The position numbers were made by a program, and so were the translations under genes. A stretch of 64,000 nt of DNA, taken from positions 76,880,001 to 76,944,000 of the forward strand of contig NC_043000.1 in NCBI RefSeq assembly GCF_006345805.1, given 5' to 3'. The stretch comes from Octopus sinensis. Its lineage: Eukaryota. The notes below the pieces were generated by a model. That model was not told the origin of the DNA, did not search any database, and was given only the letters and a program-made list of their open reading frames with translations. Within the stretch, counting starts at the first letter, position 1. Every line of letters begins with the position of its first letter. This document shows positions 21,943-62,033 of the stretch, piece after piece.

Positions 21943-22106
21943 TCAAGCATAGAATTCCTTGTCAGGAGCCTTTGTATAGGAGTAGTTGCTCTTGGTTGGC
22001 TCATCCAGTGGGTAGCTGCCCTCATCCTTCTTGCGCATCCGATAGACAATGAACATTGTGAGCAGGATACAGACAAAGAGACCAACAACGGCACCAGCAA
22101 TGATGG
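21943..22106 (-). CDS. Sdc: Syndecan terminal exon (TM + cytoplasmic domain), AIIAGAVVGLFVCILLTMFIVYRMRKKDEGSYPLDEPTKSNYSYTKAPDKEFYA*
   Basis: ttgttttag acceptor, phase 1; GxxxG TM helix, C1 motif RMRKKDEGSY, C-terminal PDZ-binding EFYA, TGA stop. Confidence 0.97.
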
Positions 22107-22761
22107 CTAAAACAACAGAATAGACAATAAAGTTTATAATTTTAATCAGCAGAAATTACAAAGAAACTGAGGGTTATGAGTTTTGTGCATGGCACTTATT
22201 AAATAGGTTTCAAATTGGGAGTACGTCTTTTATAAAGACTATCTTAAAATGGTAAATATAATTATCTTGGGATTCTTCTAGAAAGAATTAGATAAAATTA
22301 GATTTTCACAAGAATAAGGCTTATTTTTCAAATAGTCTGCCAGTTAAGCAGTTCAATAAATGAATAAATAAAATAACATAAAAATAAGGTCTCTAAGGCT
22401 ACAAGTTCTAACATTAAAGAGATTCAAACTATATAATTTAACTTCTGTGACCATATTTTATGTAATATGGGGTTCATTTAATTATAAAGAATTTGTAGTG
22501 ATTTAGTAGAATAATAAACTTTCATTAATTAGGTTGGTGTTGGGAATAATTTTAACTTAAAAAGTTCTTAATTATGATGGAAGATATAAATTTAGCCTTA
22601 GCAATTAACTCAAGTTGGCCCATACTGACAACTGGTAACCAGATGATATAACATGAAATATCTAATGAGAGATGAGGAAAGAGGAAGATAATGGGAGGTG
22701 TCCTGAAAGCAAGGTTTAATTTTAGACACTAAAAGGCTTAGCTAAAGATGTTTTAACTCAC

Positions 22762-22857
22762 CTGCCATGATACCTGGTTCTTCTGTGGCACTTTCATTTG
22801 GTCTGGGTTCATGTATCAGACCATCATCATTTGGAGCTGAAGACATCTCACTTGATG
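22762..22857 (-). CDS. Sdc: Syndecan juxtamembrane exon, SSSEMSSAPNDDGLIHEPRPNESATEEPGIMA
   Basis: Long polypyrimidine + cag acceptor, cag|gtgagt donor, 96 nt, phase 1-1; EPGIMA joins in frame to AIIAGAVVG. Confidence 0.9.
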
Positions 22858-23169
22858 CTGTTGGGAGAGAAGGTGAGGAAAAAAGAAATTAAGTAGGTAA
22901 TATGTTTGGTTAATAGTGGAGGATGATAATGAGGGAGGCTGATTCATTAGTTGCCTGTGGAAAAGAAAGTAAGCTGATTGATTGACAAAACTGGGCAACT
23001 GTGAAGAGGAATGAATAGAGATATATGTATGGAATGACAGTGGATAGCTGAATAATCAGCATTTGATTGGTTTAGCTATGTAGAGACTTGAATTGAGTGA
23101 ACTATGTAGAAAAGCAACTTGATTTGGTGTTACGTATGCAGATGTTAAAACATTGCTATCATGTTGCTA

Positions 23170-23400
23170 CCTAACAGGTGGACTTGGCAACAATGGCTAG
23201 AATGAGATGTACATGGAAGTGCTTTCAGAAACTGAATGGTGTGATAAGTGCTGTAAATTATGGGAGTGAGATATGGATGTCACAAAAAGAAATGGGATAA
23301 AATGACTGGTCATGTCCTAAGGAAAGATGAAAGAGAGGAAGGGGAAGAATGAGAAAAACTTAGCTAAAGATGACTAAAGAGAAAATGAGGTTGGTGAGTG
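23170..23400 (+). mobile_element. Highly decayed RTE RT fragment
   Basis: ARMRCTWKCFQKL and YGSEIW-like readings. Confidence 0.45.
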
Positions 23401-24102
23401 CAGTGATGAAAATAGAGTAAAATGGTGAAAACTGGCATGGTCCTGCAAGTATAACCTCTGTTTTGGCATGGAAAATGGTGTTTTAACACTTGTATATAAT
23501 GTCTAGAAGGATTAGTGAAAACAATCAAATCATTTGTAGGAGCAGATCTCTTCTTTTCTGCTAGGCATGGTGGTGAATATATTACATGAATTATTAGACT
23601 TGTGTGAGATCACTCCATCGTTATATATTTCAAAGCTAATATCTAGGATAGTTGTTCCTTACAATACTATTGTAGTCGCTTTGGGTTTGCACACTCCATT
23701 GTCCTTAAGGCACAGGCAACACCATGAAGAATTGTTTGACCCGAGTATTAGTTGATTATTGACCGATAATTTATTTTATCAAGCCTGAAAGGATATAAGG
23801 CAAAGTGGACAAGATTTGAACTTAGAATTGTAAAGGTATTTCTTCTGGTTCTCTACTTATTTTGCCAATCCACCAGGGAAGATTACATAAGTGAGTGTGA
23901 GTGTGTGCATTAGTGTAAGTGTGATTGACAGCGGGAACAGGATATTTTGGGGTGATGCATACATACATGCATAGATATACATGCATGCATTTGTGTGTGT
24001 GTGTGTGTGATGTATGTATATAATGTATGTATGAGTGAGTGAGTGCCACTGTAAAAGATTTTATTGTGTGTGTGTAAGAATCTCTTATACTGCTATACTT
24101 AC

Positions 24103-24154
24103 AAGTAGAAACTGACGATATACTGATACGGGGAGTTGACAGCTTTGGTTCAAC
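24103..24154 (-). CDS. Sdc: Probable syndecan ectodomain exon, VEPKLSTPRISISSVST
   Basis: tttttcatattttaaacag acceptor, t|gtaagt donor, 52 nt, phase 0-1; bridges the phase-0 donor at 45530 to the phase-1 exon at 22857. Confidence 0.7.
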
Positions 24155-25319
24155 CTGTTTAAAATATGAAAAACATTGAAAAAATAACATCAAAATATCA
24201 AAATAATATTGTACATGTAAGAGATAATGGCAGTATCCCTGGCAATAAAACCATATTTAGAAATAAAACCCCCAAGTGTTGGCCAAAGAAAGAAGAGTAG
24301 CCATAACTAATTTTTTAGAATATCTAAGACTAATGGAAGAGAAGGAAGTTATCCTTAAACCAGAGATCTGGTCTGCATGCTTGAATCAGAGGAGGACTTC
24401 ACTAATAGCACATTAGGACCAGGTGTTGTTAAATTCAGTGATGGATTACATCTACAACAAGAATGGCACCTTTAACAGGTTTCCACACAGTTTCTATCTG
24501 GAAACTGAATTTCACCCATATGATTTTGACTTTTAGGTTATGGTACCAAGATGCTATGCAATATGATTGACCCTCAAGCTACATGGTTGAGAAAGAAACT
24601 TCTTAACCAGACAGTTGACTTTGCACTCAATTAAAGAGAGAGTGACAAAGAGAGAGAAAGAAAAAAAAAAGACCAGCTCTTTCATAATGTGTAAAGCTGT
24701 AACTATGGTGTTTATAATATTGTGTCTATACTGTGGACAAGAGATGAATTTCTAAGTGGACAAGAGATGAATTTCTACAACTCTAGGATAAGAATCTATT
24801 ACAAATAATACATTCACGAACTCTAAATTATCTAATTGGACTGATAATTTGACTGTATTTTATTTCTATAATATTGAGTCGGTGAAAGATTAGTCACTTT
24901 AGTCTGATGGATATAGAGCTAGTTCATCTTGGGTAAACATTCATGTAAAGTTATGTATTAGTGTTCACAGAATAAACAAAAGACTAAGAAAAATATATAA
25001 ATACATTTGGCAAATATCACAATGAAACATAACCCCCCACCTTCACTCCTTTAAAACTGACATTCTAACACCATATTCACCAGGCCATTTACCTTGTAGC
25101 TCATGTATTTTACAAAGGAAAATAAAAGGCATCTATTTATTACTGGATATCAATTTAAATTCCAGAGTTGCTTCTTCTAGCTTTCTTTACCAGAATTACT
25201 CATTAAACTAACAGTTCTTTCTCACTACAGGAGTCGTTTTCATTAATTAAAACTATATTGGCTCTTCATTACATTAATTATGTTAACAACAATTAATCAC
25301 TAATATACAATCTGTTCCT

Positions 25320-27680
25320 ATGAGGACCAAAACCTCACCCCATACAACTGCCATGGAGGATCCAACACCACCCAATACACTTCAGGAAAGAAGAAATCTG
25401 GAAGGCACCCAAGAACCTGTAAATTCTACCAGCAGGGCAAATGTTGGCATGGGGAGGACGGCAAAATCTGCCGGTTTGCCCACTCGACACCCTGCCAGAA
25501 CTTCAGGGGCCTTAAAGAGAAAAGCTTTACTGAGGAAACACAAGAAATGTTTCCCAGGAAAACATTCAGAAAAGAAGTGTGCTCCTCAGATGTTCAGTGC
25601 AACGCAGCAGCTAAGCAAGAGTCTTTTTTGTGCATGGCGCAAAGGATTGTCCAGCAGCTAACCTGGCTACACCAAGCACAAAGAAGGAACCTTGCCCACC
25701 ACTATGCAAGACCACCACAGTCAACAGACACGGGATGGCCTCCCCTAACGCCTACACAGCCGTCACCCCAGTACTTTTACTAAATATTGGGGGCCTGTTC
25801 CATCAAAATAAAAACAAAATTTCTTTCCTGAGAGATCTTACTGCATGCAATCAAGCCCTATGCATAGCACTTGTGGAAACTCACCTCAGTCCTGATAGAG
25901 AGGATGCAGAAGTACACGTATCAAACTATGCCATACTGCGAACAGACAGAAGGGAAAGGAGCCATGGTGGAGTTGCTGTATACATCCGGGATGACTTCAC
26001 ACCCCAGGTCTTAATGACATACTCAAATTCAGTATGTGACACTCTAATTGTATACATAAGACAACATAATATAGTCATATGCAATACATATTGCTCACCG
26101 GATGTTCCAAACCACATAGGCAAGTTTGAAGATTGCCTCACAAGAATTAAAGAAATCCTCATGAATCTGGAACACCACGTGACCATACTTATGGGTGATT
26201 TCAACTTCCCCAACATCAAATGGCCTGAATGTCTCATACTCTCAGGAATGACTCATTGCAAGCAAGCACAGGTGGAGTCCCTGCTCAACCTCACCAATGC
26301 CCTATTCATGGAGCAAGCTGTACTCAGACCAACTAGGGAATAACATTCTGGATCTATGCTTCCCGAACAATATGGACATCATTCATGATGTGAAAGTGAC
26401 ACCGACATTAGTCTCGGATCACAACATAATAGAGCTGTCTATGTTTGGACCGAAAGTAACCAGAGACATACAGCCTAAAGGTGGCACCCAAAGGCTCTCC
26501 AATCTGAACTTCCACAAAGCAGATTGGAAATCGATCCAAAAAGAGATCCTCAGAGAGGACTGGCCAAAATGTCTCTCCACACCAGACATTGACATGAATC
26601 TAGAATGTTTCATGTCTTCTGTGCAAGCCACATGCCAGAAATATGTCCCAGAGCACAAGGCCAAAACAAATAGGAGCAAGATTCCAAGAGAGAGGAAGAT
26701 CCTTGTGAGACGACGGATGAAGGTTGAAAATTGACTCAACCAACATCCCAAAAGTAGCGAAACGTCCCGCCTAAAAACAACGCTGATGGAGATTGAAAAA
26801 AGGCTGCAACAATCCTATGTGAGGGAGAAAGCAGACAAAGAAGCTTGGGTTATAAAAAACATTAAATCAGACCCAAAGGCCTTCTTTCATTACACGAAAG
26901 AAACAGCCTCAGTACACTACAAGATAAAACCCCTCCTCCAAAAGGATGGCTCCCTCACTGACAGTCCAAAAGTGTCTTTACCACCCCATTGTAACAGACA
27001 AGTGAACGAATCAGTGGACTTCTTTGCCGCCTCACCTATAACCAGCGAGGCAGTTACAATGGAATACATTGACATTAGCGAAGATGATATACTACTAGCC
27101 ATAGATGAAGTGGACACAAACTCAACTGCTGGTTCTGATGGTTTCCCAGCAATCCTCCTCAAAGTGTGTAAGCATGCCCTGGCAAAACCCCTCAAAATTC
27201 TCTTCCAGAGCTTTCTTACAAATGGCAAACTGCCAAGCAAGCTGAAGGATGGAATAATATGCCCAATACATAAAGGGGGAAGTAGAGCAGATGCCAAAAA
27301 CTATAGGCCTAGCTCTCTGACTTCACACATCAGCAAAGTCATGGAATGGATAGTCAGAGGGAAACTAATCGCATTCCTTGAGGAAAGTAACTTGCTGAGT
27401 GATACCCAGCATGGTTTTCGACCAGGTAGGAGCTGCCTGACCCAGCTCTTACATTATGACTGGGTGTTGAAGCAAATCAAATGTGGACGTAATATATCTT
27501 GATTTTGCAAAAGCTTTTGACAAGGTGGATCATGGTATGATATGCCACAAACTGCGTGACCTCAGCATAGCTGGAAAACTTGGAGTGTGTTTACGTGACT
27601 TTCTGAAAGTAGTGGTTAATGGAGCCACCTCTATGAACACACAAATAGTAAGCGGTGTTCCACAGGGCACTGTCTTGGTT
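25320..27680 (+). mobile_element. CR1/L2-group LINE relic: CCCH-finger region, APE endonuclease and N-terminal half of RT; 3'-truncated
   Basis: ORFs 25630-26343 (LNIGGL, VETHL, RTDR...GGVAVYIR, MGDFNFP), 26786-27502 (NYRP.SLTSHISKVME, QHGFRPGRSCLTQL) and 27483-27725 (YLDFAKAFDKVDH, SGVPQGTVL). Confidence 0.9.
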
Positions 27681-27689
27681 AATTGCAAC

Positions 27690-28441
27690 AGGAGAAATAG
27701 TGATCAATTTGGCTGCTATTTCTAATATTTTCGGTATGTGGTTTTGAGCAACTTGTTGCAATTAACCCTTAATTATAATTATTATAATCCTTACCAAATA
27801 TGGTCTTTTCCATACTGATAAATCTACTAGGCGAAATTTATTAATTTTATTAAATTAATTATATTCCACCCTTTTTTGCATATTGAATACAATTGCTCCC
27901 TTACAAGAAATCTACGAAACTTTGTTTTGTTGGTAATGTTTTTGTAGCTCACGTGGTAATTTTGGAGGGAGATATATTTATTCGCATGTCTGTATAAGTG
28001 TAGGAATGCTAGCTGTCTGTTAGATCGTTCAATGTCGCTGGTCGTGCTGGTGTAACGGGTGAGTTTTTCCCCTAGCATTTCTAGATTTATAGGAAATATT
28101 ATATTGACAAGGAAATGAGCCTTCGGTTCTAATCCAGAAACAATTTGTCTATAATTAATCTATAGGCTAGGATTTCGTTAATTTCTTCCTTTTTTGCCAT
28201 ATACAGGTTACAAATTCTGTTTGTTTGTGGAGACTTTTTATTAGTAGGAGAAATAGTGATCAATTTGGCTGCTATTTCTAATATTTTCGGTATGTGGTTT
28301 TGAGCAACTTGTTGCATTTAACCCTTAATTATAATTATTATAATCCTTACCAAATATGGTCTTTTCCATACCGATAAATCTACTAGGTGAAATTTATTAA
28401 TTTTATTAAATTAATTATATTCCACCCTTTTTTGCATATTG
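27690..28441 (+). mobile_element. Hammerhead-bearing repeat: 556-bp monomer plus a 196-bp partial second copy (pLTR/retrozyme-like)
   Basis: Near-identical direct repeats at 27690-27885 and 28246-28441; HHR-like fold at 28098-28155; homologous monomer at 54247-54690 (-). Confidence 0.7.
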
Positions 28442-28527
28442 TATATATATATATATAGATGTATGTACGTACATATACATGTATACATATATAGACATAT
28501 TCATATGCACACACGAACATATATATA

Positions 28528-29172: not shown

Positions 29173-29208
<36 letters not shown>

Positions 29209-29844: not shown

Positions 29845-32679
29845 ATCATCATCATCATCATCATCATCATCGTTTAACCTCCGTTCTCCATGCTAGCATG
29901 GGTTGGATGGTTCGACCGGAGATCTGGGAAGCCAGAAGGCTGCACCAGGCTCCTGTCTTATCTGGCAATGTTTCTACAGCTGGATGCCCTTCCTAACGCC
30001 AACCACTCCGCGAGTGTAGTGGGTGCTTTTTACGTGCCACCCGCACAGGTGCCAGGCGAGGCTGGCAACAGCCACGGTCGGATTGGTGCATTTTACGTGC
30101 CACCGGCACGGAAGCCAGTCGGGGCGGAGCTGGCATCGGCCACGATTCGGATAGTGCTTTTTACATACCACCAGTCCAGGGGTCCTGGCATCTGCCAGGT
30201 GCCAGTCATAAAATTGGTTCAATTTCAATTTCACTTGCCCCAACATGTCTTCGCAAGCAAAGGGGGTTGGCATCGGTGCCTGTCGTCGGATGAGGTTCGA
30301 TATCGACTTCGCTTGCCTCAACAGGTCTTTGTGTCCAAGGGAGGAAAGGCATGCATAAGTGGGCTGGGCTCACTTGTCCTGCCTGGTCTTCACATGTACA
30401 GCATATTTCCAAAGGTCTTGGTCGCTGGTCATTTCCTCAGTGAGGCCTAAAGTTCGAAGGACGTGCTTCACCACCTCGTCCCAGGTTTTCCTGGGTCTAC
30501 CTCTTCCACGGGTTCCCTCAACTGCTAGGGATGGGCACTTTTTCACACACCTATCTTCATCCATTCTCGCCACATGACCATACCAGCGCAAACGTCTTTC
30601 TTGCACACCACAACTGATGCTTCTTAGGTACAACATTTCTCTCAAGGTACTAACGCTCTGTCGAGTATGTACACTGACATTACACATCCATCGGAGCATA
30701 CTGGCTTCATTCCTCGCGAGCTTACACATGTCCTCAGCAGTCACGGCCCATGTTTCACTGCCATGTAGCATGGCTGTTCGTACACATGCATCATACAGTC
30801 TGCCTTTTACTCTGAGCGAGAGGCCTTTAGTCACCAGCAGAGGTAAGAGCTCCCTAAACTTTGCCCAGGCTATTCTTATTCTAGCAGTTACACTTTCAAT
30901 GCACCCACCCCCACTACTGACTTGGTCACCTAGATAACGGAAGCTATCAACTACTTCTAGTTTTTTCCCCTGGAAAGTGACGGAAGTTGTTTTCTGCAGA
31001 TTTTCAGAGGTTAATGCTCCCGAGCATCTGCCACATTCAAAAACTATCTTCCCAGTTAGCCTACCTTTGACATTGCTGCACCTCTTATGTGTCCATAGCT
31101 TACACTGGGTACATCTTATAGAGTTTCTACCTACACCTTTTCTACAGATCGAGCAGGGCCATCTTCCTGAAGACATTTGTGGATTGTCTACCTTCCAACT
31201 TATTAGTACTTTGGTTTTAGCTAGGTTGACTCTAAGGCCCCTCGATTCTAAACCCTCCTTCCACACCTGGAACTTCTCCTCCAGTTCTGATAGTGACTCA
31301 ACAATTAGAGCAAGGTAGTCAGCATAGAGGAGCTCCCAGGGGCAACCTGTCTTGAATTCCTCCGTAATTGCCTGGAGGACTATGATAAATAGGAGGGGGC
31401 TGAGTACTGAACCCTGGTGAACCCCAACCTCTACTTTGAATTCTTCTGTGTACATGTTGCCAACCCTCACCTTACTTACGGCATCTCTGTACATGGCTTG
31501 CACAGTCCTCACCAGCCATTCATCTATCTCTAGTTTCCTCATTGACCACCAGATAAGGGATCGGGGGCCCTGTCAAAGGCTTTCTCCATGTCAACAAAAG
31601 CCAGGTACAGGGGCTTATCTTTGGCTAGGTATTTCTCCTGCAGCTGCCTTACCAGGAATATAGCATCAGTGGTACTTTTCCCTGGCATGAACCCAAACTG
31701 CATCTCATCTAAACTAACTCTCTCTCTAATTAGTTGGGCTATGACCCTCTCCGTAACCTTCATTACCTGATCCAACAGCTTGATACCTCTGTAATTATTT
31801 GTATCTAGGGCGTCACCTTTACCTTTGTAGCAGTTGACTAGTATGCTGCTACACCAGTCATTGGGTATGACTCCTTCGTGTATCACCTGGTTGTCTATAT
31901 GGGTGACTAGGTTATAGCCGACACTGCCAGATATTTTGAGCATCTCTGCAGTAATTCCTGATGGGCCTGGGGCTTTCCCTGTCTTCATGCTTCTAATTGC
32001 TTTAACTACCAAAGAATTTTCAACTCAGATGGCTGGTCCCTCTGTTGGGTTGACATTCGGCAGACTCTCTTTATCCCATTCATTTTCTTTATTCAGCAAC
32101 CTTTCATAGTGGCATCTCCAAACCTCTCTCTTTGCATCCTCATTTAGCGCAAGTGAACCATCATCCATGCGGACACATTTCTCTCCTACCACATCATGAT
32201 TCTCTCTCACACACTGTCTTGCAACACGAAATACCTCAAGTCTTTCATCCTCATGGCTCAGAACATCGGCAAATTTTTTCTTATCCGCTTCCCCTCTGGC
32301 TAAATAAACCTGTCTCCTAGCTTCCCTTCTGGCTGTCTGATACAATTCCCTGCTAACACCGTTCTTCCAGTCCTTCCAAGCCTGTCTCTTTTGTCTAATA
32401 GCCCTGTCAACCACAGTGTTCCACCACCACGTTACTCTGGGTCGAGATGGTACTTTGCTCCATCCACAGATCTAGTCAGTGGCTGTCAGCAGATTGTCCC
32501 GTAGAAATCTCCAGTTGTCTTCCACATTAAGTGAAGCTATATCCTCTTCTATTTCGTCAAAGGCTTCGAATAGTATGTCTCTAAATCTCTGTCCATTTGC
32601 AGGATCTTTAAGCTTCCAGACCCTTCTCCTCCAAGCTGGTCTTCTTCTGGGCAACCATTTAGCTCTGATCCTGAAGTCG

Positions 32680-32680
<1 letters not shown>
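29845..32680 (-). mobile_element. 5'-truncated RTE LINE (~2.8 kb; RT with YADY, PHD-like finger, 3'UTR, (ATG)n tail)
   Basis: ORFs 30370-31542, 31539-32012 and 32025-32414 are homologous to the 55340-59494 copy. Confidence 0.95.
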
Positions 32681-32742
<62 letters not shown>

Positions 32743-32797
32743 CATACAGGTGTATATACATATGTATATTTATATACATGTGTATATATATATATAT

Positions 32798-33086
32798 AAC
32801 AATTGCAGCGTGGAAGGTGTTTGTAAGCCATTTAAGAAACACACAAAAGCCATTCGATTCACTTCAACATTTAAGTTTAATTTGTCAAAAAATTTTCGTC
32901 GCTAAAATCCGCGACCTGTTCACTGACAAAAATCCGTGCTGCATCTCACGGATTTTTGTCAGTGAACAGGTCGCGGATTTTAGCGACGAAAATATTTGAC
33001 AAATTAAACTTAAATGTTGAAATGAATCGAACGGCTTTTGTGTGTTTCTTAAATGGCTTACAAACACCTTCCACGCTGCAATTGTT
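32798..33086. repeat. Near-perfect palindrome (141/140-bp arms, 8-nt loop) in a (TA)n-flanked element
   Basis: Arms 32798-32938 and 32947-33086 are reverse complements with about four differences. Confidence 0.95.
32955..33003 (+). ncRNA. Type I minimal hammerhead-ribozyme-like motif with a G3-C8 core variant (mirror copy on - at 32881-32930)
   Basis: Stem I UUUGUCA/UGACAAA, core GUGAACAG, stem II GUCGC/GCGAC, GAAA, AUAU-U cleavage region. Confidence 0.6.
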
Positions 33087-44475: not shown

Positions 44476-45530
44476 CTTTGTAGGCTGCAGGTAGCAAGCC
44501 TACAATGCATGCAGGACCCAGGAGTTCCAACAAAAGCTGAGTTAAAATAATAATAATCCTTTCTATTATAGGCACAAGGCATGAAATTTTGGTGGAGGGG
44601 GCTAGTCGATTTCATTGACTCCAGTACTTATTTTAATGCTGAGTGAATGGAAACAATGTTTTTTTTTTAATTAGATAATAATAATGATTTCAAAATTTGG
44701 CACAAGACCAGCAATTTCAGAGTGGGGGATAATTGAATACATTGACTCCAGCACTCATTTTACTTATTTTATTGACCCTGAAAGTATGAAAGATGAAGTC
44801 AATCTTCACATGATGGTGGATTTAATGCCACTAAACATTTTACTCAGTGTGCTAATGATTCTGCTAGCCCACTGCCTCAACAACAACAACAACAATAATA
44901 ATAATAATGATAATAATAATAAAAACAATAACAAGAGCATTCAGAGAGTGCAAACCTCCGCCAAGGCAACACCAATGTCCTTTCAAAGATTAGCCAGAGA
45001 TGATTTTTAAAATGAGAATATCTGAAATAAACCCGGCTGCTCTCACAAACAAGAATATTAAAAGTGGACCCGACCACTCTCAAAAATTAAGTAAAAACAT
45101 AGAAAAAAATAATCCAGAATCCTTGTCCTGTATTAGATTGATCCTAAAATCTAATCAGTTTGTGCCAGTCACAAGGCCAAACGTCCTTGAAAATTTCATC
45201 CGAACCCATCCAAAACAATATGTCCACCTTCACTAAGGCAGAGGTAATAATAATTCTTTTTACTATAGGTACAAAGCCTGAAATTTGGGGGAGGAGATAG
45301 TTGATTATATCAACCCCAGTAATCAGCTGGTACTTGTTTCATCGACCTCGAAAAGATGAAAGGCTAAGTTGATTTTGGTGGAATTGAACTCAGAACGTAG
45401 TGACGGGCTAATACTACTAAGCATTTCATCCAGTGTGGTAACAATCCTGCCAGCTCACCACCTTAAATAATAATAATAGTAATAATAAGAAGAATAAGAA
45501 TAATAATCAATGTTTCAGTATCTTACGTAC

Positions 45531-45643
45531 ATTTGGTTTTCTAGACAATATACCTTTCACAGTAACTGCCTTTGTTGTGGTCGTTGTGATCTTAGGAGCA
45601 ACTATTTTTCTGTTCAAAGTTGTGACTTCTGTTTTTACAACTG
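45531..45643 (-). CDS. Sdc: Probable syndecan Thr-rich ectodomain exon, AVVKTEVTTLNRKIVAPKITTTTTKAVTVKGILSRKPN
   Basis: ttttttttctttatcag acceptor (CAGCAG tandem), aat|gtacgt donor, 113 nt, phase 1-0; mucin-like composition. Confidence 0.75.
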
Positions 45644-46549
45644 CTGATAAAGAAAAAAAAGAACACAAGTAAAAACCTTTATAGTTTCACGACAAATACA
45701 AAACCAGAGATTTTCTTAAATTTTAATATATTTTTTACAGATTTTAAGAGTATTTTGTAAAGATTTTACTCCAGTTTTTAAATTATTTTGTTTGAAATTT
45801 TGGTTGGCATTGCAATCATGATACAAAAATAAAATACCTTACACCAAATCGATAATAACTGCAGTAATGCTAAAAGGTTAAGAATTTACTTTGCAATTAT
45901 GGGATCACAGGTCCAAATCTACAGTGTGGGATCTTAGGCAACTGTTATTTCTAGAGCCTCAGCTTGACCTATGTCTTGTGAATAAATAGAAGCCCATCAA
46001 ATGGATTGTAACTAATTTAAAGATCTGACTTTGTCACAGTGTTGTGTTTGGGAATTATGTTAGGCACAGGAGTGGCTGTGGTTAAAAAGTTTGCTTCCCA
46101 ACAACATGGTTCTGGGTTCAGTTTCACTGCATGGCACCTTGGGCAAGTGTTTTCTGCTATAGCTCTGGGCCAATCAAAAACTTATGCATGGATTTGGTAG
46201 ACGGAAACTGTTACAGTCTCCTTGCTTTGACATATCAAATAGATAGCTGTAAATAAGTGTCATTGTAATGGAAGTGGTGTCCATTTCCGATATTCTGTGA
46301 AAACATGCCAGGTCAAAGGGAAATATTTCCTTACAGACAATGATGATGATGATGAGGATGTAAATGTGTCTATGGTATTTCACTTATATGCAAAATCAAT
46401 GAACCTGATTTTCAGTTGACTGAACACCTGAAAATTCTGGGGTCCAGTACAGAAATAGTATGGTGGAATTCATAATGAAAATATATATTAAATCAGTAAG
46501 AATTTCTTTTAAGTATTCATTATATATGTACATTACTTCTTAGAAACCA

Positions 46550-48859
46550 AGCAGCGGCTATTCCAGCCACCAGTTGCAGATACAAATACCTCAGTGGCTG
46601 CTTTACCTGCTTCCATTTTCTACTGTTTACAAACATATCGCTTAACAATTCCTCGGCCAATTAGTGATGTTGTTGCATCTGATCATTGGCCTGCACATAC
46701 ACTATCACAGGAAGTACTTCCTGATGATTGAAGCTGCTCCAGCTACATTTTTGTGAAAATGGGTTGAAAAAATTTGTCTGTGAGTGATGTCTTGAACCAA
46801 GTGTTGTTGTCTGATGAAGAGGACATCGACAATAATGATTATGGCAATGATGTTGATTTTGAGAGTGAATCTGACAATGATTTAGACCTGGAAAGTGATA
46901 GCGATGATCTCGACAATTATGGTGCTATACAAAATGTACAGCCACTGGCAATGTGCAGTGTCTGTTGGTTGTCAGAATAGGGGGCATGTTTGTGTTCATG
47001 GCAGGAACTGCATGCATGCTCTACATGGCACTGGCAAGGTAACAGGCCCAATGTTCCACCCAGAGTAAGAGCTAATACTCCTCCAGGATGGCAGAGAGAT
47101 ACTATAGGCTTTTCAGAGTGCCAGTTTACACCAAATAATCCACCAGGGCCCAAGAACATGTCTAACACTATAAATGTAGACATCACTCCAATTAATTATT
47201 TTAGTTTATTTTGGAATGACAACTTATGGAATATTTTACTCGAGGAAACTAAGAATCAAGCTGAACATGTGCTTCAGGCAAAGCTGAATAATTTCTCAGT
47301 AAAAATTTTGCATGAGAAAAAACTTACATTGGAAGAACTGAAAGCTTTTTGTGGTGACCATGGAAATGCTGGTGTACAAGGATTGCTATGAAAAGTACTG
47401 GTGGTAAAAGGATGCCTTACTAACACTGACCCCAGGTTTTCCAGAGGTTATGAGCCGCAACAGATTTCGTGCCATTTGGTCTTTATTGCACTGTGTGAAC
47501 GAGGATGATCAGAACATTGATAGGAACGATAAACTGTACAAGACTTGTCATATATTCAATCACTTGTTTGATAAATCCAAACAACACTATGTGCCTGGCT
47601 GTGATTTATTGCTAGATGAGGGAATGATCCCTACAAAGAACAAGCTTTCATTCAAGCAGTATATAAAAGATAAGCCAATATGTTGGGGATAAAATCTTTA
47701 TTATTATGTGATTCTGAAAACAGATACATCTGCAATGCAGAAATGTATACTGGAAGGAGATGATGCAAATGAAATTGACAACCTTGGTGTCACAGGAAAC
47801 TTAGTTGTGAGGATGACAAATGAATATGCCAGACAAAACTATGCACTCTACACTGACAGATTTTACATGCCTGTACAACTTGTAGAATATCTTCTTGTCA
47901 ACAAAGATATTCGAATGTGTGGTACTACCAAGACAAATAAAAAAGAATTCCCAAGGATGTTCATAAAAAGAAATAATGAGATGGAAAAGGGGGACTCAGA
48001 ATTTTTGTTCAGCAGAAATGTGGCTGTCTTTGTTTTTGTTTGGAAAGACAAAAGACTGATTTATTTTATTAAGTCACTCTTCATATTACTCTACACCAAG
48101 AACATGTACAGCAATATGATGTAAATGAACACAGAAGGGTCTCTGTCCCTTGTCCTAAAGCAGTGAAAGAATATAATGCCCACATGAGTGGAACAGACAA
48201 GATTGACTAAATTACTCGACTTCAAAAGCGTCACTGTCATTACAAGTGGCAGAGACTCCTGATGGTAATGTTTTTTATGTGGGCTGCCTATAATATATCC
48301 ATGTTGATGGGTTTCTTCAAACCACATCACCCCGCTGGAAAGAGAGTGTACACATTTCACATCTTTCTAGATAAACTCTGCCACCAACTTGTTGGCAATA
48401 TTAGAAACAAGAACACTGACTTTGGCAGACAATGCTCAGCTGAGCAGGATGATGAAAAGAGGCTGTTAAATGAAGCACACTATGATGTGGAAAGGGCGGA
48501 AACAGCATTCAGCAACAATTGTTGCTGAGGGCAAACAGATGGATCCACCCTACCAGGCTGTAAGACTGTATACAAATGCAAATATTGTGAGAAGTTCCTC
48601 TGCATTGGAAAAACCATACAGTAACTGCTGGTTTGACTGGTACTACAAGCACCAGTATTGACGATAAAACTAAAACAAAAATACAAGTGATAAGGACAAT
48701 GATGCACTCTATTTGGCATTTTATTTCAATATGAGAGACAGAAGACACATTTTAGTGACACTGAAACAATATTTGGTGGGAAATAATTTTTTTGGCTCTT
48801 TCAGCCAGGGAACCTGGGGTGAGGGTGCCGAGGACAACGGGTATCTGGAGTTTAAAGGG
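46550..48859 (+). mobile_element. Decayed piggyBac (PGBD4-like) transposon
   Basis: Acidic N-terminus, MSRNRF, LDEGMIP, YTDRFY, MSGTDKID motifs; right end aaaggg|TTAA at 48860-63; left TIR not found, so the start is approximate. Confidence 0.85.
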
Positions 48860-50738: not shown

Positions 50739-52045
50739 ATGTATAGTATATGTATATTCTTTTAGTAACCATCCAGTGTTTATCTAGATTAAAATGGAAA
50801 GCTGTTAAATTGACCAAATTATCTTATAGAAGTCAAGAAACTAACACTTTGCTTATATAAATAAGATGGTAAATGGTCTTGTATTGTTACTGAGTTAGTT
50901 TAATATTTAGTTGTATAATGGTTAAACAAACAATGGTTAGCAAGTTGGAGCAACAACTTCAATAATTCCACACAAATTATCTTTCTTACTTAAACACCTT
51001 TATTTCTCTTACCAGTTACTCCCACCCTTATATAATGTGAGGTAGCCACATACCTCCTCTACAGCAAACATCTGTTACTGTTCCTTTATCATACTTTCAC
51101 TTTTCAACACCTAATATAGGCCATCTCCCACTTAGTGAAGAGGCTTTTTGTCTCCTAAGTTATTTGCAACCTTGCTAGTGCTGGTACTATAAAAGAAGCA
51201 TCCAGTACACTCTGCAAAGTGGTTGGCATTAGGAAGAGCATTCAGTTGTAGAATCCATGCCAAAGAGATATTGGAGATTGATGCAGTTTCAGTTCATTGG
51301 ATTTTGATGAAACATCCAACCTATGTGAGCATGGATGACAAGTAATAAATGATGAATATGATGATATAAACATCATTGTTCTTTACCATTTGTGTTCATG
51401 AATTCATGATCCAGTAATGATATCATGCAGGTGTTCACTCAGCATAATAAAAATAAGAGCCAAAATCTCTCTCAAATCACACCTTCCCATCTTAGATGAA
51501 GAAAAGACAATGGTTAACAAAATTGTACATTTCCCTAAACAGAAAGGATAGTCAAGGTTGTAATATGCTTCTTTAATCAAGGACAACCAAGGACTAAATG
51601 CTACCACTGTCACTGACAACAGTCTTACATAGATTGTTAAGGTGGCACCAATGTTGTCACTGTGGTTTTGTTAGTAGTAGTGGCAGAGGTGGAGGGTGGT
51701 GGTGATTGTAATAGCAGTGGAGTGGTTGATGTTATTGCACTAGTGGTTGTCATAGTCGGTATTGTGATCATCTTTTTAACCAGCCTATCAACTCATCTGT
51801 ACATGTTGAGATAAGATCTTGGATTTTGTGTCACAAGTTAAAAAGATCTCTCTCCATGACCACTTAGCTTGCCAGACGTCGCAATCAAATGTTCCTCTAA
51901 TCACACTACAATCTTTTAATTAAAAAAAATCACATTTGTCACAACTTTGTTCTCACCTATGAGACACACCCACAAAGGATAAAAACAGAGATAGTGGGCC
52001 AGGTGGATGGGTGATAGGATATATTCAGTTCCAGAAAATGCTTAC

Positions 52046-52243
52046 CATCACAAACTGGGGTTTTTGGAAGCTGGACTTGACTTCCTTCAATCTTATTTCC
52101 AAGTTTATCAGAACACCAACATCTGCTGCCATGACACTGGACTTGTTCATATTCTCCTGACTCAGCACAATTTGGACGGAATGACCCCAGCAATCCTCTA
52201 GAATGTTTGACAAGGTTCCATACACATGGTAACAAATTAGTTC
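52046..52243 (-). CDS. Thyroglobulin type-1 domain exon, GTNLLPCVWNLVKHSRGLLGSFRPNCAESGEYEQVQCHGSRCWCSDKLGNKIEGSQVQLPKTPVCD (probably part of the syndecan)
   Basis: ttttcttttgaattacag acceptor, g|gtaagc donor, 198 nt, phase 1-1; six Cys with P.C...G.Y...QC....CWC.D..G..I.G spacing. Confidence 0.9.
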
Positions 52244-55570: not shown

Positions 55571-58500
55571 GTTTAGTGTTGTGTACGGGGTTTGAACTTG
55601 AGTTCTATTGTTTGTCTATGAATCCTGCCAAACGCGAGTTTTCTTTTTAGGTCCATGACGCTACTAGGGCCAATACCACCCCCACCCACACCCTCAGGGT
55701 TGGCACCCTCAACGTTGGCACACTGAAAGGCAGATCTGGCGAGATCGTTGAATTGCTTGAACGGAAGTGTGTTGATATATGCTGCATTCAAGAAGTGAGG
55801 TGGAGAGGAGATTCTGCTAGGTTCCTCACAGGCAAAGGACAGAGGTACAAGATTTTCTGGGCTGGGAATACTGACGGGGTCGGGGGTGTGGGCATGCTTA
55901 TCGCCGAAAAATGGGTAGATAAGGTAATCGAGGTAGTCAGGGTATGTGACAGAATAATTAAGATTAGATTAGTGCTCCATCATAGTTTAGCAACTATTAT
56001 ATCGGCCTATGCCCCTCAGCCAGGGCTACCTGATGGACAGAAAGACTGTTTCTATGACACCCTACTGCAGACCACATCATTGACGAATGACAGGGACCTT
56101 CTCTTTGTGGCTGGTGACTTCAATGGGCATGTTGGACGATGTGCTGGGGGCTTCCATGGCGTGCATGGAGGCTATGGTTATGGTTCCCGCAACGAGGAGG
56201 GAACCAGGCTGCTGGAGTTCTGCGATGCGAATAGTCTTATGGTTTGCAACACTAACTTCAGGAAACCGACAAGCCACCTGGTCACCTACCGATCGGGCCG
56301 GCATACTAGTCAAATCGACTACATCCTTGCGAGAAAAAGGGAAAGATGGCTGCTTATAAATGCCAAAACCTTCCCAGGTGAAGAATGTACCCCTCAACAT
56401 AGACTGGTAGTTAGTGACTTTAGGATCAGGACTAAGAGGACGACTAGAAGACGACCAACATGGAGAAGAAGGGTCTGGAAGCTTAAAGACCCTGCAAATG
56501 GACAGAGATTTAGAGATATGTTACTTGAAGCCTTTGACGAAATAGAAGGGGGTATAGCTACACATGGGGTAGAAGACAACCGGACGCTTCTAAGGGACAA
56601 CTTGCTGAAAGCCACTGACCAGATCTGTGGCTGGTGCAAAGTCCCCTCAAGACCCAAATAATGTGGTGGTGGAAAAATATTGTTGACAGGGCTATTAGAC
56701 AAAAGAAACAGGCTTGGAAGGACTGGAAGAATGGTGGTAGCAGGGAAGTGTATCAGACTGCCAGAAGGGAAGCTAGGAGGCAGGTGTATTTAGCCAGAGG
56801 GGAAGCAGATAAGAAAAAAATTGCCAATGTCCTGCGCCGGGAGGATGAAAGACTTGAGGTATTTCGTGTTGCAAGACAGTGTGTGAGAGAGAATCGTGAC
56901 GTAGTAGGAGAGAAATGTGTTCGCGAGGATGACGGTTCACTTGCTCTAAATGAGGATGCAAAGAGAGAGGTTTGGAGACGCCATTATGAAAGGTTGCTGA
57001 ATAAAGAAAATGAATGGGATAAAGAGAGTCTGCCGAATGTTGACCCAACAGAGGGACCAGCTATCCGAGTTGATAGTTCCGTGGTAGCTAAGGCAATTAG
57101 AAGCATGAAGACAGGGAAAGCCCCAGGCCCATCAGGAATCACTGCAGAGATGCTCAAAATGTCTGGTAGTGTCGGCTATAGCCTAGTCACACGTATAGTT
57201 AACCAGGTGATACACGAAGGAGTCATACCCAATGACTGGTGTAGCAGCATAATAGTCAGCTGCTACAAAGGTAAAGGTGACGCCCTAGATACAAATAACT
57301 ACAGGGGTATCAAGCTGCTGGATCAGGTAATGAAGGTTACGGAGAGGATTATAGCCCAACTAATTAGAGAGAGAATTAGCTTAGATGAGATGCAGTTTGG
57401 GTTCGTGCCAGGGAGAAGTACTACTGATGCTATATTCCTGGTAAGACAGCTGCAGGAGAAATACCTAGCCAAAGATAAGCCCCTGTACCTGGCTTTTGTT
57501 GACATGGAGAAAGCCTTCGACAGGGTTCCCCGATCCCTTATCTGGTGGTCAATGAAGAAACTAGGGATAGATGAATGGTTAGTTAGAGGTGTGCGAGCCA
57601 TGTACAGAGACGCTGCTAGTAAGGTGAGGGTTGGCAACGAGAACAGTGAAGAATTCCGGGTAGAGGTTGGGGTCCACCAAGGTTCAGTCCTCAGTCCCCT
57701 CCTATTTATCATAGTCCTCCAGGCAATAACGGAGGAATTCAAGACAGGATGCCCCTGGGAGCTCCTCTATGCTGATGACCTTGCTCTAATTGCTGAGTCA
57801 CTATCAGAACTGGAGGAGAAGTTCCAGGTGTGGAAGCAAGGTCTAGAATCGAAGGGCCTCAGAATCAATCTAGCCAAAACCAAAGTCCTAATAAGTAGGA
57901 AGGTAGACAAGTCACAAACGCCTTCAGGTAGATGGCCCTGCTCGATCTGTAAAAAAGGTGTAGGTAGAAACTCTATAAGATGCACCAAGTGCAAGCTATG
58001 GACACATAAGAGATGTAGCAATGTCAAAGGAAGGCTAACTAGGAAAATAGTTTTTGTCTGTGGCAGATGCTCAGGAGCAATAAACACTGAAAATGTGCAG
58101 AGACCAACGTCTACATGTTCCAGGGAGAAAAACTAGAAGTAGTTGATAGCTTCCGCTACCTAGGTGACCAAGTCAGTAGCGGGGGTGGGTGTGCTGAAAG
58201 TGTAACTGCTAGAGTAAGAATAGCCTGGGCAAAGTTTAGAGAGCTCTTACCTCTGCTGGTGACAAAAGGCCTCTCACTCAGAGTAAAAGGCAGACTGTAT
58301 GATGCATGTGTACGTACAGCCATGCTACATGGTAGTGAAACATGGGCCGTGACTGCTGAGGACATGCGTAAGCTCGCAAGAAATGAAGCCAGTATGCTCC
58401 GATGGATGTGTAATGTCAGTGTTCATAATCGACAGAGTGTAAGTACCTTGAGAGAAAAGTTGAACCTAAGAAGCATCAGTTGTGGTGTGCAAGAGAGACA

Positions 58501-58785
58501 TCTGCGCTGGTATGGGCATGTGACGAGAATGGGTGAAGATAGTTGTGTGCAAAAGTGCCACACTCTAGCAGTTGAGGGAACCTGTGGAAGAGGTAGACCC
58601 AGGAAAACCTGGGACGAGGTAGTGAAGCACGACCTTCGAACTTTAGGTCTCACCAAGGAAATGACTAGAGACCGAGACCTATGGAAGTATGCTGTGCGTG
58701 AGAAGACCCGGCAAGACCAGTGAGAACAGTCAAAATCAAACCAAATCAACATCAGTGGAAATTGCAGCTGTGGTTAAGCGAACCA

Positions 58786-59336
58786 TCCGATCATTTGTCC
58801 GTTGCCACCCTCGCGTGGCCACCGTGCCGTTGGCACGTAAAAGCACCATCCGCTCGTGTCCGTTGCCAGCCTCGCATGGCCCCCGTGCCGTTGGCACATA
58901 AAAGCACCATCCGCTCGTGTCCGTTGCCAGCTTCGCCTGGCCCCCGTGCCGGTAGCACGTAAAAGCACCATCCGTTCGTGTCCATTGCCAGCCTCGCCTG
59001 GCCCCCGTGCCGGTAGCACGTAAAAGCACCATCCGTTCGTGTCAGTCGCCAGCCTCGCCTGGCCCCCATGCCGTTGGCACGTAAAAGCACCATCCGCTCG
59101 TGTCCGTTGCCAGCCTTGCCTGGCCCCCGTGCCGGTAGCATGTAAAAGCAGCATCCGTTCGTGTCCGTTGCCAGCCTCGCCTGGCCCCCGTGCCGGTAGC
59201 ACGTAAAAGCAGCATCCGTTCGTGTCCGTTGCCAGCCTCGCCTGGCCCCCGTGCCGGTAGCACGTAAAAGCACCATCCGTTCGTGGCCGTTTGCCAGCTA
59301 TGTCTGGTACCTGTGCAGGTGGCACGTAAAAAGCAC
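58786..59336 (+). repeat. 61-bp x 9 tandem array in the RTE 3'UTR
   Basis: Unit catccg(c/t)tcgtgtccgttgccagcctcgcctggcccccgtgccg(tt/gt)(g/a)gcacgtaaaagcac; starts at 58847, 58908 ... 59274. Confidence 0.97.
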
Positions 59337-60169
59337 CCACTACACTCACGGAGTGGTTGGCGTTAGGAAGGGCATCCAGCCGTAGAAACACTGCCAAATC
59401 TGACTAGGCCTGATGAAGCCTCCCGGCTTCACAGACCCCAGTTAAACCGTCTAACCCATGCTAGCATGGAAAATGGACGCTAAATGATGATGATACATAT
59501 ATAAATATATTTGATGGGGTTCTTTCAGTTTCTGTCTACCAAATCCACTCACATGACTTTGGTCAGCCTGAGGCTATATTAGAAGACACTTTCCCAAGGT
59601 GCCATGCAATGGGACTGAACCCAGAACCATGTGTTTGGGAAGCAAGTTCCTTACCACACAGCTACTCCTGTGCCTACATATATATACATATATATACATG
59701 GTACTGAAAAGTTCCTGTCTTTGGGTAAAAGAAAATACCGGAGGATCAGTTAATTATGATTTTATCCAACATATCTTAGATTCACACACTTATTGCAGTG
59801 GCCCTTCAGTTTTTCTAAGCCCTGTAAGAGAACTCAGAAGGTTGGACCTCCACCCAGAGCAGACCTTTTGAGATACCCTTAAAGCCAGGAACATTTCAGC
59901 ACCCTCCTCACATGTGCGCACGCGCACACACACAATGGCCTTCTTCCTGTTTCTGTCTACCAAATACACTCTCAAGGCTTTGATCAGCCTGGGGCTGTTG
60001 TAAAATACATTAGTTCAAGGTGCCACAGTAGAACTGAATTTGGAACTATTTAAATGGGAAGCCAATTTCTTACACACAAGTATGCTTACATCAATATGGA
60101 TGCATTTATTTTTTATTATTACTAATTTTAATTTTCATTATTTATGTGTTATTTTTTATTGTTTATATT

Positions 60170-60760
60170 CCTATACTACACATGCACACTCCCACACACA
60201 CCTGCATGCACGTGCACACTCACCCACATGCCTGCACACCCTTGGCTACACCTAAGCATCCACACACACTTCACCTCATCTCTCTGCTCCTCTCATGCAT
60301 GCACACACATACGTACGTCCATGCACACACATATACCTCCACACACAATGCACATACATACACTTCTACACACTCACACGCACATATATAGAGAGAGACA
60401 CACATTTTCACTCAGTCTATGCACACATGTCAATACACACACACGCCCTTCAGACAGCCTCTGACTCACTATTAACCCTTCCATCTATGCACACACACAT
60501 ACTGCACACTCACCCATTCATACGCCTGTCACTATAGCTGCTGATCTCTCAGAGTGATATCAACACACACACACACAGATCCTACTACACACACAAACAC
60601 AAAGTTAACACCACATCCACAGTCTCACATACATACACTTCCATACACTCACACATACATGTATACACACACATACACACACATTCCCCCTCCATTCACA
60701 CATACACACACCCTTCAGACTGTCTGTGATTTACTATTGACCTTTCCACCCATGCAAACA
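60170..60760. repeat. CA-rich low-complexity/microsatellite tract
   Basis: Degenerate (CA)n throughout. Confidence 0.85.
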
Positions 60761-61808
60761 CACACAAAAAGAACCGTCTGTTTGGTAGGCTTCTATAGCT
60801 TCTGTTCACAGTGGATACTTCCCTAAGGTACTGTGCAATGAGATTGAGCTTGAAACCACAGAGTTGCAGTGTATTCCTTAATCCCATAGCCATGCCCTAA
60901 AAATTATGGCTGCTTGTCATACCTATCTTTTGGTGACGTTAGATAGCCTAGTGGTTAGAGGATAATCTACTCGACAAGATTAAGAGTTAAAAACTGCAAC
61001 AGTTGGTTCAAGGACACAACTTTTTAGTCTACATGAACTCATTTCAGAGAGATCAGTAGATTATAGCAATTGGTAGTGTATAATACCAACTTTGTGTGTG
61101 TGTGTGTGTGTGTGTGTTGTGTGTGTGTGTGTGTGTGCATACATGTATATGTTTACATATATATCTATACATACTGTGTAGATAAGATACACTGTTACTG
61201 GTTTTAGTCATTGTTTCTGCAGTTATACTGAGGAAACACCAAGCATTTTATTTGATCATATTGACAGTATATATCCTGGTTTTTACAATGGGTACCTCAT
61301 ATCTCTGTGCATTATAAATCATAACTAATGGGGCTGGCACCGGATAGAGCATCTAGTCATATAACAGTGCCATAAAAATACCCAACCAAAGTCTGCCAGC
61401 ATGGAAAACTGGATGGAGAAGCATCAATGGTTTTGATTAATCCTGTAACTTGTTTTAGTGAATTGTATTTGCACAGATACGTATATATTTTCATCTTATA
61501 GACAAGTTTATGGCACTAAGGGACAGGATAGATGTAATGAAATGACTTAACCAAGAATTAAGACTATTTTGAGAACTGTGCTTTCATTGGGTACACACAT
61601 ATAGCACATACATATGCATGTATATACACATACACACATTGTGTGGTATGAAGATTTTAGAGTCATTTGACTCACAAAAGTGTATTCCCTTTTTGGAGTG
61701 AAATTCCAGGTTTCCTCAAAATCTTGGAGGAAAAGAACCCCCCAAAAAACAACAAAACCCTGAAGGAAACCATCAATAACAAAAATCTAATTAAAATTAA
61801 AAACTTAC

Positions 61809-62033
61809 CCTTTCGGCAGTCAGGTTTAGTATCTGTCAACTTGGTGCCATTAATTAGCTTCCCATCTAGAGACACACACCAACAGGCATTTATCATGCAC
61901 TGCATTTTCTTGTACTCTCCTATGCTTGTACACTGAGGGAGATACTCTTCACTACGATTTAGATTCTGTTTGTAGTGTTTCTGGCAGTGAGTCAGGGCCT
62001 TAATCATGGGTGCATCAGTAACAGTGGTGATTT
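61809..62033 (-). CDS. Thyroglobulin type-1 domain exon, ITTVTDAPMIKALTHCQKHYKQNLNRSEEYLPQCTSIGEYKKMQCMINACWCVSLDGKLINGTKLTDTKPDCRK (probably part of the syndecan)
   Basis: Long polypyrimidine + cag acceptor, g|gtaagt donor, 225 nt, phase 1-1; six Cys with YLPQC...GEY...QC....CWCV..DG motif. Confidence 0.9.

Follow-up and report, generated by a model that had tools for sequence, protein, structure and literature searches.

A syndecan gene with two thyroglobulin type-1 exons

The stretch of Octopus sinensis DNA analysed here (the window, 64,000 nt; G000:C4:76880001-76944000, where C4 is the contig that holds it) carries on its minus strand the last six of the nine coding exons of LOC115210817, a syndecan gene whose predicted product bears two tandem, folded thyroglobulin type-1 (TY) domains in its ectodomain. 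The usual picture of a syndecan ectodomain is that of an unstructured carrier of glycosaminoglycan (GAG) chains. The best explanation overall, and one that we consider probable, is that this is a single-copy, lophotrochozoan-type syndecan that is canonical in function and has a folded TY pair in addition. Judged by its sequence, the window gene is the octopus orthologue of the annotated lophotrochozoan syndecans, and the TY-syndecan is the standard syndecan of the lophotrochozoan phyla sampled; it is neither an octopus novelty nor a new kind of molecule.

An earlier note on this DNA had proposed six minus-strand exons with canonical splice sites and the phase chain 1-1, 1-1, 1-0, 0-1, 1-1, 1-stop, encoding two six-cysteine TY modules (with CWCV and CWCS) and the tail RMRKKDEGSY...EFYA. 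The exons and their phases were recovered, with polypyrimidine-AG acceptors and GT donors at all six, and reading of the sequence together with Pfam confirmed the modules and the tail. All of the exons that follow are on the minus strand. Coding exon 4 of nine (61809-62033; 225 nt, phase 1-1) encodes the first TY domain (TY1), ...CQKHY...QCMINACWCV...PDC, as seen from its splice sites, a 100% tblastn match and PF00086, and coding exon 5 (52046-52243; 198 nt, phase 1-1) encodes the second (TY2), ...CVWNLVKHSRGLLGSFRPNC...QCHGSRCWCS...PVC, on the basis of splice sites, tblastn and PF00086. The Thr-rich stalk is split between coding exon 6 (45531-45643; 113 nt, phase 1-0; AVVKTEVTTLNRKIVAPKITTTTTKAVTVKGILSRKPN), placed by homologue-guided mapping and tblastn, and coding exon 7 (24103-24154; 52 nt, phase 0-1; VEPKLSTPRISISSVST), placed by tblastn and splice phase. 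Coding exon 8 (22762-22857; 96 nt, phase 1-1), which lies within the Pfam Syndecan match, encodes the juxtamembrane residues and the start of the transmembrane (TM) helix, SSEMSSAPNDDGLIHEPRPNESATEEPGIMA. The remainder of the helix, AIIAGAVVGLFVCILLTMFIVY, with the GxxxG-type motif AGAVVG, is encoded by coding exon 9 (21943-22106; 164 nt, phase 1-stop), as are the stop codon and the cytoplasmic tail, which consists of C1 (RMRKKDEGSY), V (PLDEPTKSNYSYTKAPD) and C2 (KEFYA).

Spliced together, the six exons give 281 codons plus a split first codon. The product includes the RefSeq protein XP_036358075.1 (P0001; O. sinensis LOC115210817, 'uncharacterized protein') with 100% identity, and the UniRef name of that protein is 'Syndecan'. 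The O. vulgaris model CAI9721392.1 is a near-identical counterpart. For Octopus bimaculoides, four isoforms of the syndecan gene are annotated (X1-X4, 369-380 aa), and no TY-less isoform, such as in-frame skipping of a symmetric TY exon would give, was found among these four. The acceptor of the stalk exon, exon 6, is a tandem cag-cag (NAGNAG; 45641-45646, minus strand), of which the upstream AG is taken in the O. sinensis model (CDAVVK) and the AG 3 nt further downstream in the O. vulgaris model (CDVVK); the O. bimaculoides isoforms vary likewise at the stalk acceptor (CDAV vs CDAAV).

The donor of the stalk exon was obtained by homologue-guided mapping, blind enumeration of AG...GT intervals ranked by Ser/Thr/Pro content having given the wrong one. 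A Thr-rich open reading frame downstream of TY2 (51637-51792, minus strand) was also tried as a stalk exon and rejected as intronic, since no AG acceptor gives it a phase-1 start in frame and tblastn showed it to be absent from homologues. This frame and the Thr/Ala/Ser-rich intronic frames at 40356-41488 (both strands) mimic a mucin-like stalk and are present in no homologue; such low-complexity or transposon-associated sequence can be mistaken for exons when these are called by eye.

Domain content, predicted structure and conserved residues

In a Pfam analysis of the window product, exons 4 and 5 gave two Thyroglobulin_1 matches (PF00086, E = 2.5e-27), and exons 8 and 9 a Syndecan match (PF01034, E = 2.5e-27; 95.1 bits, the cut-off being 25.2). 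The cysteine spacings are 17-10-4-1-19 in TY1 and 18-10-4-1-20 in TY2, and the presence of the QC...CWCV core, the six cysteines and the TY fold identifies the domains as TY type 1A. On the syndecan side, the TM helix AAIIAGAVVGLFVCILLTMFIVY holds the GxxxG-type AGAVVG, through which dimerisation is predicted, and the tail has C1 RMRKKDEGSY, the variable region and C2 EFYA, the PDZ ligand. A phmmer search of the PDB returned thyroglobulin at E = 3e-46.

An AlphaFold2 model of 273 aa, run on an alignment of 89 sequences, gave a predicted local distance difference test score (pLDDT) of ~95 for both TY domains, ~50-60 for the 80-residue Thr/Ser-rich stalk, i.e. disordered, and >90 for the TM helix (residues 215-248 of the model). 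With two PF00086 repeats modelled at a pLDDT of ~95, the textbook statement that syndecans have no folded ectodomain domain does not describe this protein. Every syndecan-defining feature that could be checked is present, and the octopus protein departs only from the description of an unstructured ectodomain. When the model was compared with the PDB using Foldseek, thyroglobulin and the TY pair of saxiphilin were matched at E ~1e-10, with saxiphilin, the closest two-domain match, 32-35% identical over ~140 columns. The p41 fragment in its cathepsin-L complex (1icf; TMt 0.71, root-mean-square deviation (rmsd) 2.5 A) and the IGFBP C-domain (2dsq; TMt 0.72, rmsd 1.9 A) were also matched, as were, more weakly, EpCAM and Trop2 (E about 5e-3 to 2e-2).

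Across the alignment of 89 homologues, the conserved blocks stand in the order IxID, acidic DD...SG, TY domain(s), variable stalk, PGxLAAIIGGAVVGLL, RMRKKDEGSY and EFYA, and conservation reaches at least 90% in the DD and SG columns of the acidic region. Among the 68 proteins with two TYs, TY2 is better conserved than TY1, with the consensus CVFxLVKxSxGLLGxxRPxCTxDGEFExIQCxGSxCWCVD. The best-conserved positions other than cysteine are those of the general TY consensus, to which TY2 adds its N-terminal helix and GLLGxxRPxC, the stretch that precedes the second cysteine. The loop between the third and fourth cysteines varies in length, with 4 residues in cephalopod TY1, 8 in most mollusc TY1s and 6 in most single-TY proteins.

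Upstream exons and the full-length protein

Upstream exons were sought by searching the whole assembly with the full-length O. bimaculoides protein. Coding exon 1, which encodes a putative signal peptide (MEMLLKTTLFVFGLLAVLQSQASTTVPLSQ) and has a GTGAGT donor, is located ~152 kb upstream of TY1 (C4:77094325-77094414, minus strand), on the same strand as the window exons, and is 91% identical to the O. bimaculoides N-terminus. Coding exon 2 (LNQANNEEVIDIDETHDNL; C4:76961538-76961594, minus strand) lies ~17.5 kb past the end of the window. Coding exon 3, the Ser-Gly exon, has an AG acceptor and a GT donor and was located on a 6.3-kb contig that is unplaced in the assembly (C5854:5320-5434, minus strand). 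The encoded sequence, HDISSDGSGDSDNDEEEEEEEESSGNDESTGSGVTDQA, is strongly acidic and has three Ser-Gly sites (DGSGD, SSGN and GSGV), and the exon ends in phase 1 and thus fits the phase-1 start of the TY1 exon. A Ser-Gly cluster had been expected to lie upstream, outside the window, and this acidic, phase-compatible exon agrees with that expectation; no Ser-Gly cluster or exon was found in the window, including 62034-64000, by tblastn with the O. bimaculoides N-terminus.

A 100-N assembly gap, visible as a run of N at 63761-63860, is situated 1.7 kb upstream of the TY1 exon and is a plausible candidate for the home of contig C5854. No sequence overlap was found by blastn between C5854 and the gap flanks or elsewhere upstream, its sole match being a ~590-bp repeat that ends at an (ATA)n run beside exon 3. 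A second copy of the Ser-Gly exon was not found on C4 by blastn.

With all nine coding exons, the gene extends over at least 192 kb. In its exon make-up the reconstruction, a protein of 369 aa, corresponds to O. bimaculoides isoform X4, also 369 aa; an exact look-up of the reconstruction in the protein collection returned no record. Its order is a predicted signal peptide, an IDID motif, the acidic stretch with the three Ser-Gly sites, TY1, TY2, the disordered Thr/Ser-rich stalk, the TM helix and the C1-V-C2 tail. The RefSeq O. sinensis model begins at an internal Met of the TY1 exon, and O. vulgaris CAI9721392.1 has an unrelated N-terminus without a signal peptide. These truncated or faulty N-termini are probably due to the N gap and to the location of the Ser-Gly exon on an unplaced contig. 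A practical correction follows from the reconstruction, namely that the gene models of both species are without the true N-terminus.

One gene rather than two

A search of the 2.7-Gb assembly with PF01034 gave two places only: exon 9 (87.3 bits, the sole full match) and a site at C4:123384055. The latter was considered as a second syndecan and rejected as a neurexin-type tail, FRSRDEGSY...KEWYV, so that LOC115210817 is the only syndecan gene visible to the search.

We also considered whether the locus has two transcription units or an extra soluble isoform, with readthrough of the stalk donor giving a secreted 'equistatin-like' TY protein (...SRKPNVRKILKH followed by a stop) and a short syndecan starting near exon 7. 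The 2015 annotation of O. bimaculoides was split in just this way, into XP_014788982.1 ('equistatin-like', 143 aa, ending in VRKILKH) and XP_014781033.1 ('syndecan-2-like', 120 aa), and in our window the readthrough frame (45507-45686, minus strand, with the intronic part at 45507-45530) is open and ends in VRKILKH and a stop, as does XP_014788982.1. The TY and syndecan parts are joined, however, in the later O. bimaculoides X1-X4 models as well as in the O. sinensis and O. vulgaris models, and the old 'syndecan-2-like' model has no signal peptide. The parts are also joined in a Logan contig of 1329 nt from run SRR3401912 (another octopod), which encodes an uninterrupted 368-aa homologue (64% identical); this intronless, transcript-sized contig connects the signal peptide, the Ser-Gly region, both TYs and the syndecan tail. 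The same fusion occurs in more than 120 homologue clusters, many of them on contigs of 1-4 kb, and the exon phases, continuous here, are conserved in Lottia and Lingula. We therefore regard this two-product arrangement as highly improbable. Split products are very unlikely to be the only output of the locus, and the readthrough product ending in VRKILKH could be a minor soluble isoform or an artefact of the old prediction. The phases, the joined newer models and the octopod transcript contig support one gene that encodes a syndecan with two tandem TYs, as originally suggested.

Spread across Lophotrochozoa

The earlier note had implied that the architecture is rare and had proposed a search for PF00086 together with PF01034 across Lophotrochozoa. 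In the protein collection that we searched, the two domains occur together in more than 120 clusters, from molluscs, annelids, brachiopods and nemerteans and with the UniRef name 'Syndecan', so the combination is widespread and the implied rarity was mistaken. The molluscs include cephalopods (Octopus, Argonauta), bivalves (Sinanodonta, Solemya, Mercenaria, Saccostrea, Magallana, Pinctada, Mizuhopecten, Mya, Dreissena and others), gastropods (Lottia, Patella, Haliotis, Lymnaea, Biomphalaria, Aplysia, Pomacea and others) and a chiton of the Polyplacophora, Liolophura. The other phyla are represented by annelids (Capitella, Owenia, Ridgeia, Paralvinella), the brachiopod Lingula ('syndecan-4') and the nemerteans Lineus ('syndecan-1-like') and Tubulanus. 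Two TYs are present in molluscs of five classes and in every named mollusc protein examined except that of Mya, where the core pattern caught one, and a single TY is present in the annelid, brachiopod and nemertean proteins. Over the 179 proteins retrieved, the core TY pattern was found twice in 64, once in 56 and not at all in 59. The arthropod matches and one bryozoan match had PF01034 without PF00086.

Gene structure is shared as well. Mapped to its own locus, the Lottia gigantea protein has nine coding exons with phases 0-0, 0-0, 0-1, 1-1, 1-1, 1-0, 0-1, 1-1, 1-stop, equal to the octopus chain. In Lingula anatina there are seven coding exons, and the single TY is encoded by one 225-nt, phase 1-1 exon right after a Ser-Gly exon that ends in phase 1. 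The symmetric phase 1 reported for the octopus TY exons, which was borne out, is thus found also in Lottia and Lingula. In a tree of TY domains (64 columns), the TY2s of all mollusc classes fall in one clade (support 92/87), which suggests that the two-TY state is older than the split of the mollusc classes. On these data, a TY exon would have been inserted into the ancestral syndecan gene early in Lophotrochozoa and then tandemly duplicated at or before the base of Mollusca; symmetric phase 1-1 exons in octopus, Lottia and Lingula are the trace expected of exon insertion followed by tandem duplication in molluscs.

There is next to no likelihood that the architecture is an exon-shuffling novelty of the octopus or of cephalopods. 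Such a view could draw on the textbook picture of unstructured syndecan ectodomains and on reviews that are silent on TY domains, but the same architecture is found in bivalves, gastropods, a chiton, annelids, Lingula and nemerteans, the exon phases in Lottia are identical, and the mollusc TY2s of all classes form one clade.

Several homologues have further modules. In P0128, P0129 and P0151 (Babylonia areolata), and in P0140 and P0144 (Aplysia, 646 aa), an additional module is present N-terminal to the TY pair, and this matches either a PKD domain of the K319L-like kind (E = 1.7e-14) or a Cys-rich domain of the ephrin-receptor-like kind (E = 2.2e-10). These additions indicate that the syndecan ectodomain has accepted more than one type of folded module. 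The JGI protein P0064 has one TY followed by ~100 residues that resemble a folded domain; by eye this region was SEA-like, and it was rejected as a SEA domain with no Pfam match there. In another JGI protein, P0058, the two TYs are separated by a long linker.

Comparison with known proteins

Like the canonical syndecans (SDC1-4, Drosophila Sdc and C. elegans SDN-1), the octopus protein has the Pfam Syndecan domain, a GxxxG-type TM segment, C1 RMRKKDEGSY, a variable region and C2 EFYA, together with acidic N-terminal Ser-Gly sites, and it is encoded by a single gene, as in an invertebrate genome. It differs from them in having two folded TY type-1A domains between the GAG region and the membrane and in having a Thr-rich stalk instead of membrane-proximal Ser-Gly sites. 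With the annotated lophotrochozoan syndecans (Lottia LOTGIDRAFT_235646, Magallana gigas K1PIE7, Capitella CAPTEDRAFT_227529, Lingula and Lineus) it shares the combination of TY and Syndecan domains, the IDID and acidic Ser-Gly motifs, and the exon phases. The differences within this group are the single TY in non-mollusc phyla, the cephalopod TY1 Cys3-Cys4 loop of 4 vs 8 residues, and, in some gastropod-type proteins, the extra K319L-like PKD or ephrin-receptor-like domain that the octopus protein is without.

Other proteins resemble it in part. Testicans (SPOCK) and Drosophila Cow are secreted heparan/chondroitin sulfate proteoglycans that likewise combine GAG chains with a TY domain. Testicans also have follistatin-like and SPARC-type EC domains, and the octopus protein is instead anchored in the membrane and ends in a syndecan tail. 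In the full-length orthologue P0002, Pfam detected Thyroglobulin_1, Syndecan and a sub-threshold glycophorin-like TM match only; no follistatin-like or SPARC-type EC domain was found, and the octopus protein is therefore not a testican. The TY type-1A fold is shared with the thyropins (p41 fragment, the saxiphilin pair, equistatin and tick IrThy), and the tandem two-TY layout with saxiphilin and IrThy, but thyropins are soluble or lie within a transferrin fold, while the octopus TYs are tethered to a proteoglycan core. To our knowledge, inhibition has been shown for no syndecan TY domain. EpCAM and Trop2 are also single-pass type I membrane proteins with a TY in the ectodomain, although they are without a GAG region or syndecan tail and their one TY is packed between N and C domains within a compact dimer. 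Echinoderms offer a precedent for a folded module in the ectodomain of an invertebrate syndecan, in that some of their syndecans carry a SEA domain, and a TY domain has been reported in none (PMC10381214); that module is SEA rather than TY, and the clade is a different one.

Proposed function of the TY pair

From established syndecan biology, the distal Ser-Gly sites would carry heparan or chondroitin sulfate chains, the TM helices may dimerise through the GxxxG-type motif, and the EFYA tail would couple to PDZ proteins and the cytoskeleton. The rigid, disulfide-bonded TY pair would then be held directly under the GAG chains, with ~80 disordered residues between it and the membrane, and may be released by shedding near the membrane.

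For the TY pair itself, we tentatively favor, by analogy and with a confidence somewhat short of even, a thyropin-like role, in which the pair would bind papain-family cysteine proteases, either on the cell surface or once shed, under modulation by the adjacent GAGs. This guess is based on the likeness to the saxiphilin pair, on testican-1 and EpCAM, and on a two-TY thyropin that is modulated by GAGs (PMC10889554). In thyropins, the TY loops L1-L3 form the protease-binding wedge; saxiphilin is counted among the thyropins with demonstrated inhibitory properties, and cathepsin-L inhibition is cited for testican-1, itself a TY proteoglycan (PMC10889554). Membrane-bound EpCAM is also reported as a cathepsin-L inhibitor (PMC8114703).

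Alternatively, the TY pair may not be a protease inhibitor and may instead bind a soluble ligand as in IGFBPs, self-associate in cis or trans as in EpCAM/Trop2, or act as a rigid spacer for the GAG chains. This set of possibilities taken together also falls below an even chance, by slightly less, and non-inhibitory ligand binding or IGFBP/EpCAM-type self-association is about equally likely as a thyropin-like function. The IGFBP C-domain (2dsq) and EpCAM/Trop2 were matched by Foldseek about as well as p41, the conserved non-cysteine positions are those of TY domains in general with no inhibitor-specific pattern, and the length of the Cys3-Cys4 loop differs by group (4, 8 or 6 residues). Set against this, no ligand is known, the nearest match to the pair is saxiphilin, a thyropin with demonstrated inhibition, and testican-1 offers the case of a TY proteoglycan cited as a cathepsin-L inhibitor (PMC10889554).

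Several points count against the syndecan reading as a whole or its thyropin-like extension. The O. sinensis splice junctions are predicted from the RefSeq model, from the logic of phases and splice sites, and from homologues, and the Ser-Gly exon, on an unplaced contig, is linked to the gene by the orthologue and by phase compatibility. GAG attachment is predicted from the Ser-Gly context. The 64-column TY tree does not settle whether the single TY of other phyla matches mollusc TY1 or TY2, and the date proposed for the acquisition of TY is tentative, given that one bryozoan is without a TY and that flatworms, rotifers and phoronids lie outside the sample. The residues conserved across the TY-syndecans approximate the general TY consensus and speak neither for nor against inhibition. 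We know of no diagnostic sequence motif for thyropin inhibition, and many TY domains, such as those of thyroglobulin and IGFBP, are not known to us as inhibitors.

A more far-reaching possibility, which we think unlikely, is that the sole syndecan of molluscs, annelids, brachiopods and nemerteans is bifunctional, being both a heparan-sulfate co-receptor and a membrane-tethered, GAG-regulated thyropin that would control pericellular cysteine cathepsins or trap a ligand and would be shed as a soluble inhibitor. We know of no syndecan with a thyropin-type function of the core protein, and none was described in the papers that our search returned.

Repeats and neighbouring sequences

The introns of the syndecan gene are rich in remnants of long interspersed nuclear elements (LINEs) and piggyBac elements. 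LINE (non-LTR) fragments with an endonuclease/exonuclease/phosphatase domain, reverse transcriptase and a PHD-like finger are intronic at 25615-27725 (plus strand), 30370-32831 (minus strand) and 55651-58723 (plus strand), and another is located downstream of the gene at 2731-3748 (minus strand). The longest LINE open frames are in the copy at 55.6-58.7 kb. Directly 3´ of this copy is a 61-bp tandem repeat (58796-59337; 8.9 copies, 91% matches), and a related GC-rich repeat with a 137-bp period (2309-2578) lies near a LINE fragment. Similar 'GAFYVPPAQ...' open frames were noted at 29.9-30.4 kb and 53.1-53.6 kb. Stop-broken remnants of a piggyBac-type transposase (46981-48124, plus strand; DDE_Tnp_1_7, E = 4e-19 and 1e-11) are located in the intron that separates TY2 from the stalk exon. 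An RCC1 repeat frame (PF00415, E = 7e-7) at 5297-5650, on the opposite, plus strand, is located ~16 kb past the 3´ end of the syndecan gene and probably represents an exon of a neighbour gene that is convergent with it and has an RCC1-like domain.

Novelty and significance

No account of a syndecan with TY domains was found by full-text search of about 8.4 million papers and preprints, and the word 'thyroglobulin' is absent from a 2021 syndecan review and a 2006 comparative-genomics paper. As to whether the architecture is already described, it is at the level of database annotation, with XP_036358075.1 in RefSeq and the UniRef name 'Syndecan', and no publication was found. The architecture is thus catalogued yet apparently undescribed, having been public since the first mollusc and annelid genomes, with the sequences present in RefSeq and UniProt and both domains detected automatically. 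To a syndecan specialist it would be moderately interesting rather than very surprising.

Collectively, these comparisons show that in four sampled phyla the only or typical syndecan has one or two folded TYs in its core protein, encoded by conserved phase 1-1 exons. The gene offers a clean example of exon insertion and tandem exon duplication in an old single-copy gene, and it raises the testable idea that the core protein may add a protease-inhibitor or ligand-binding activity beside the GAG chains.

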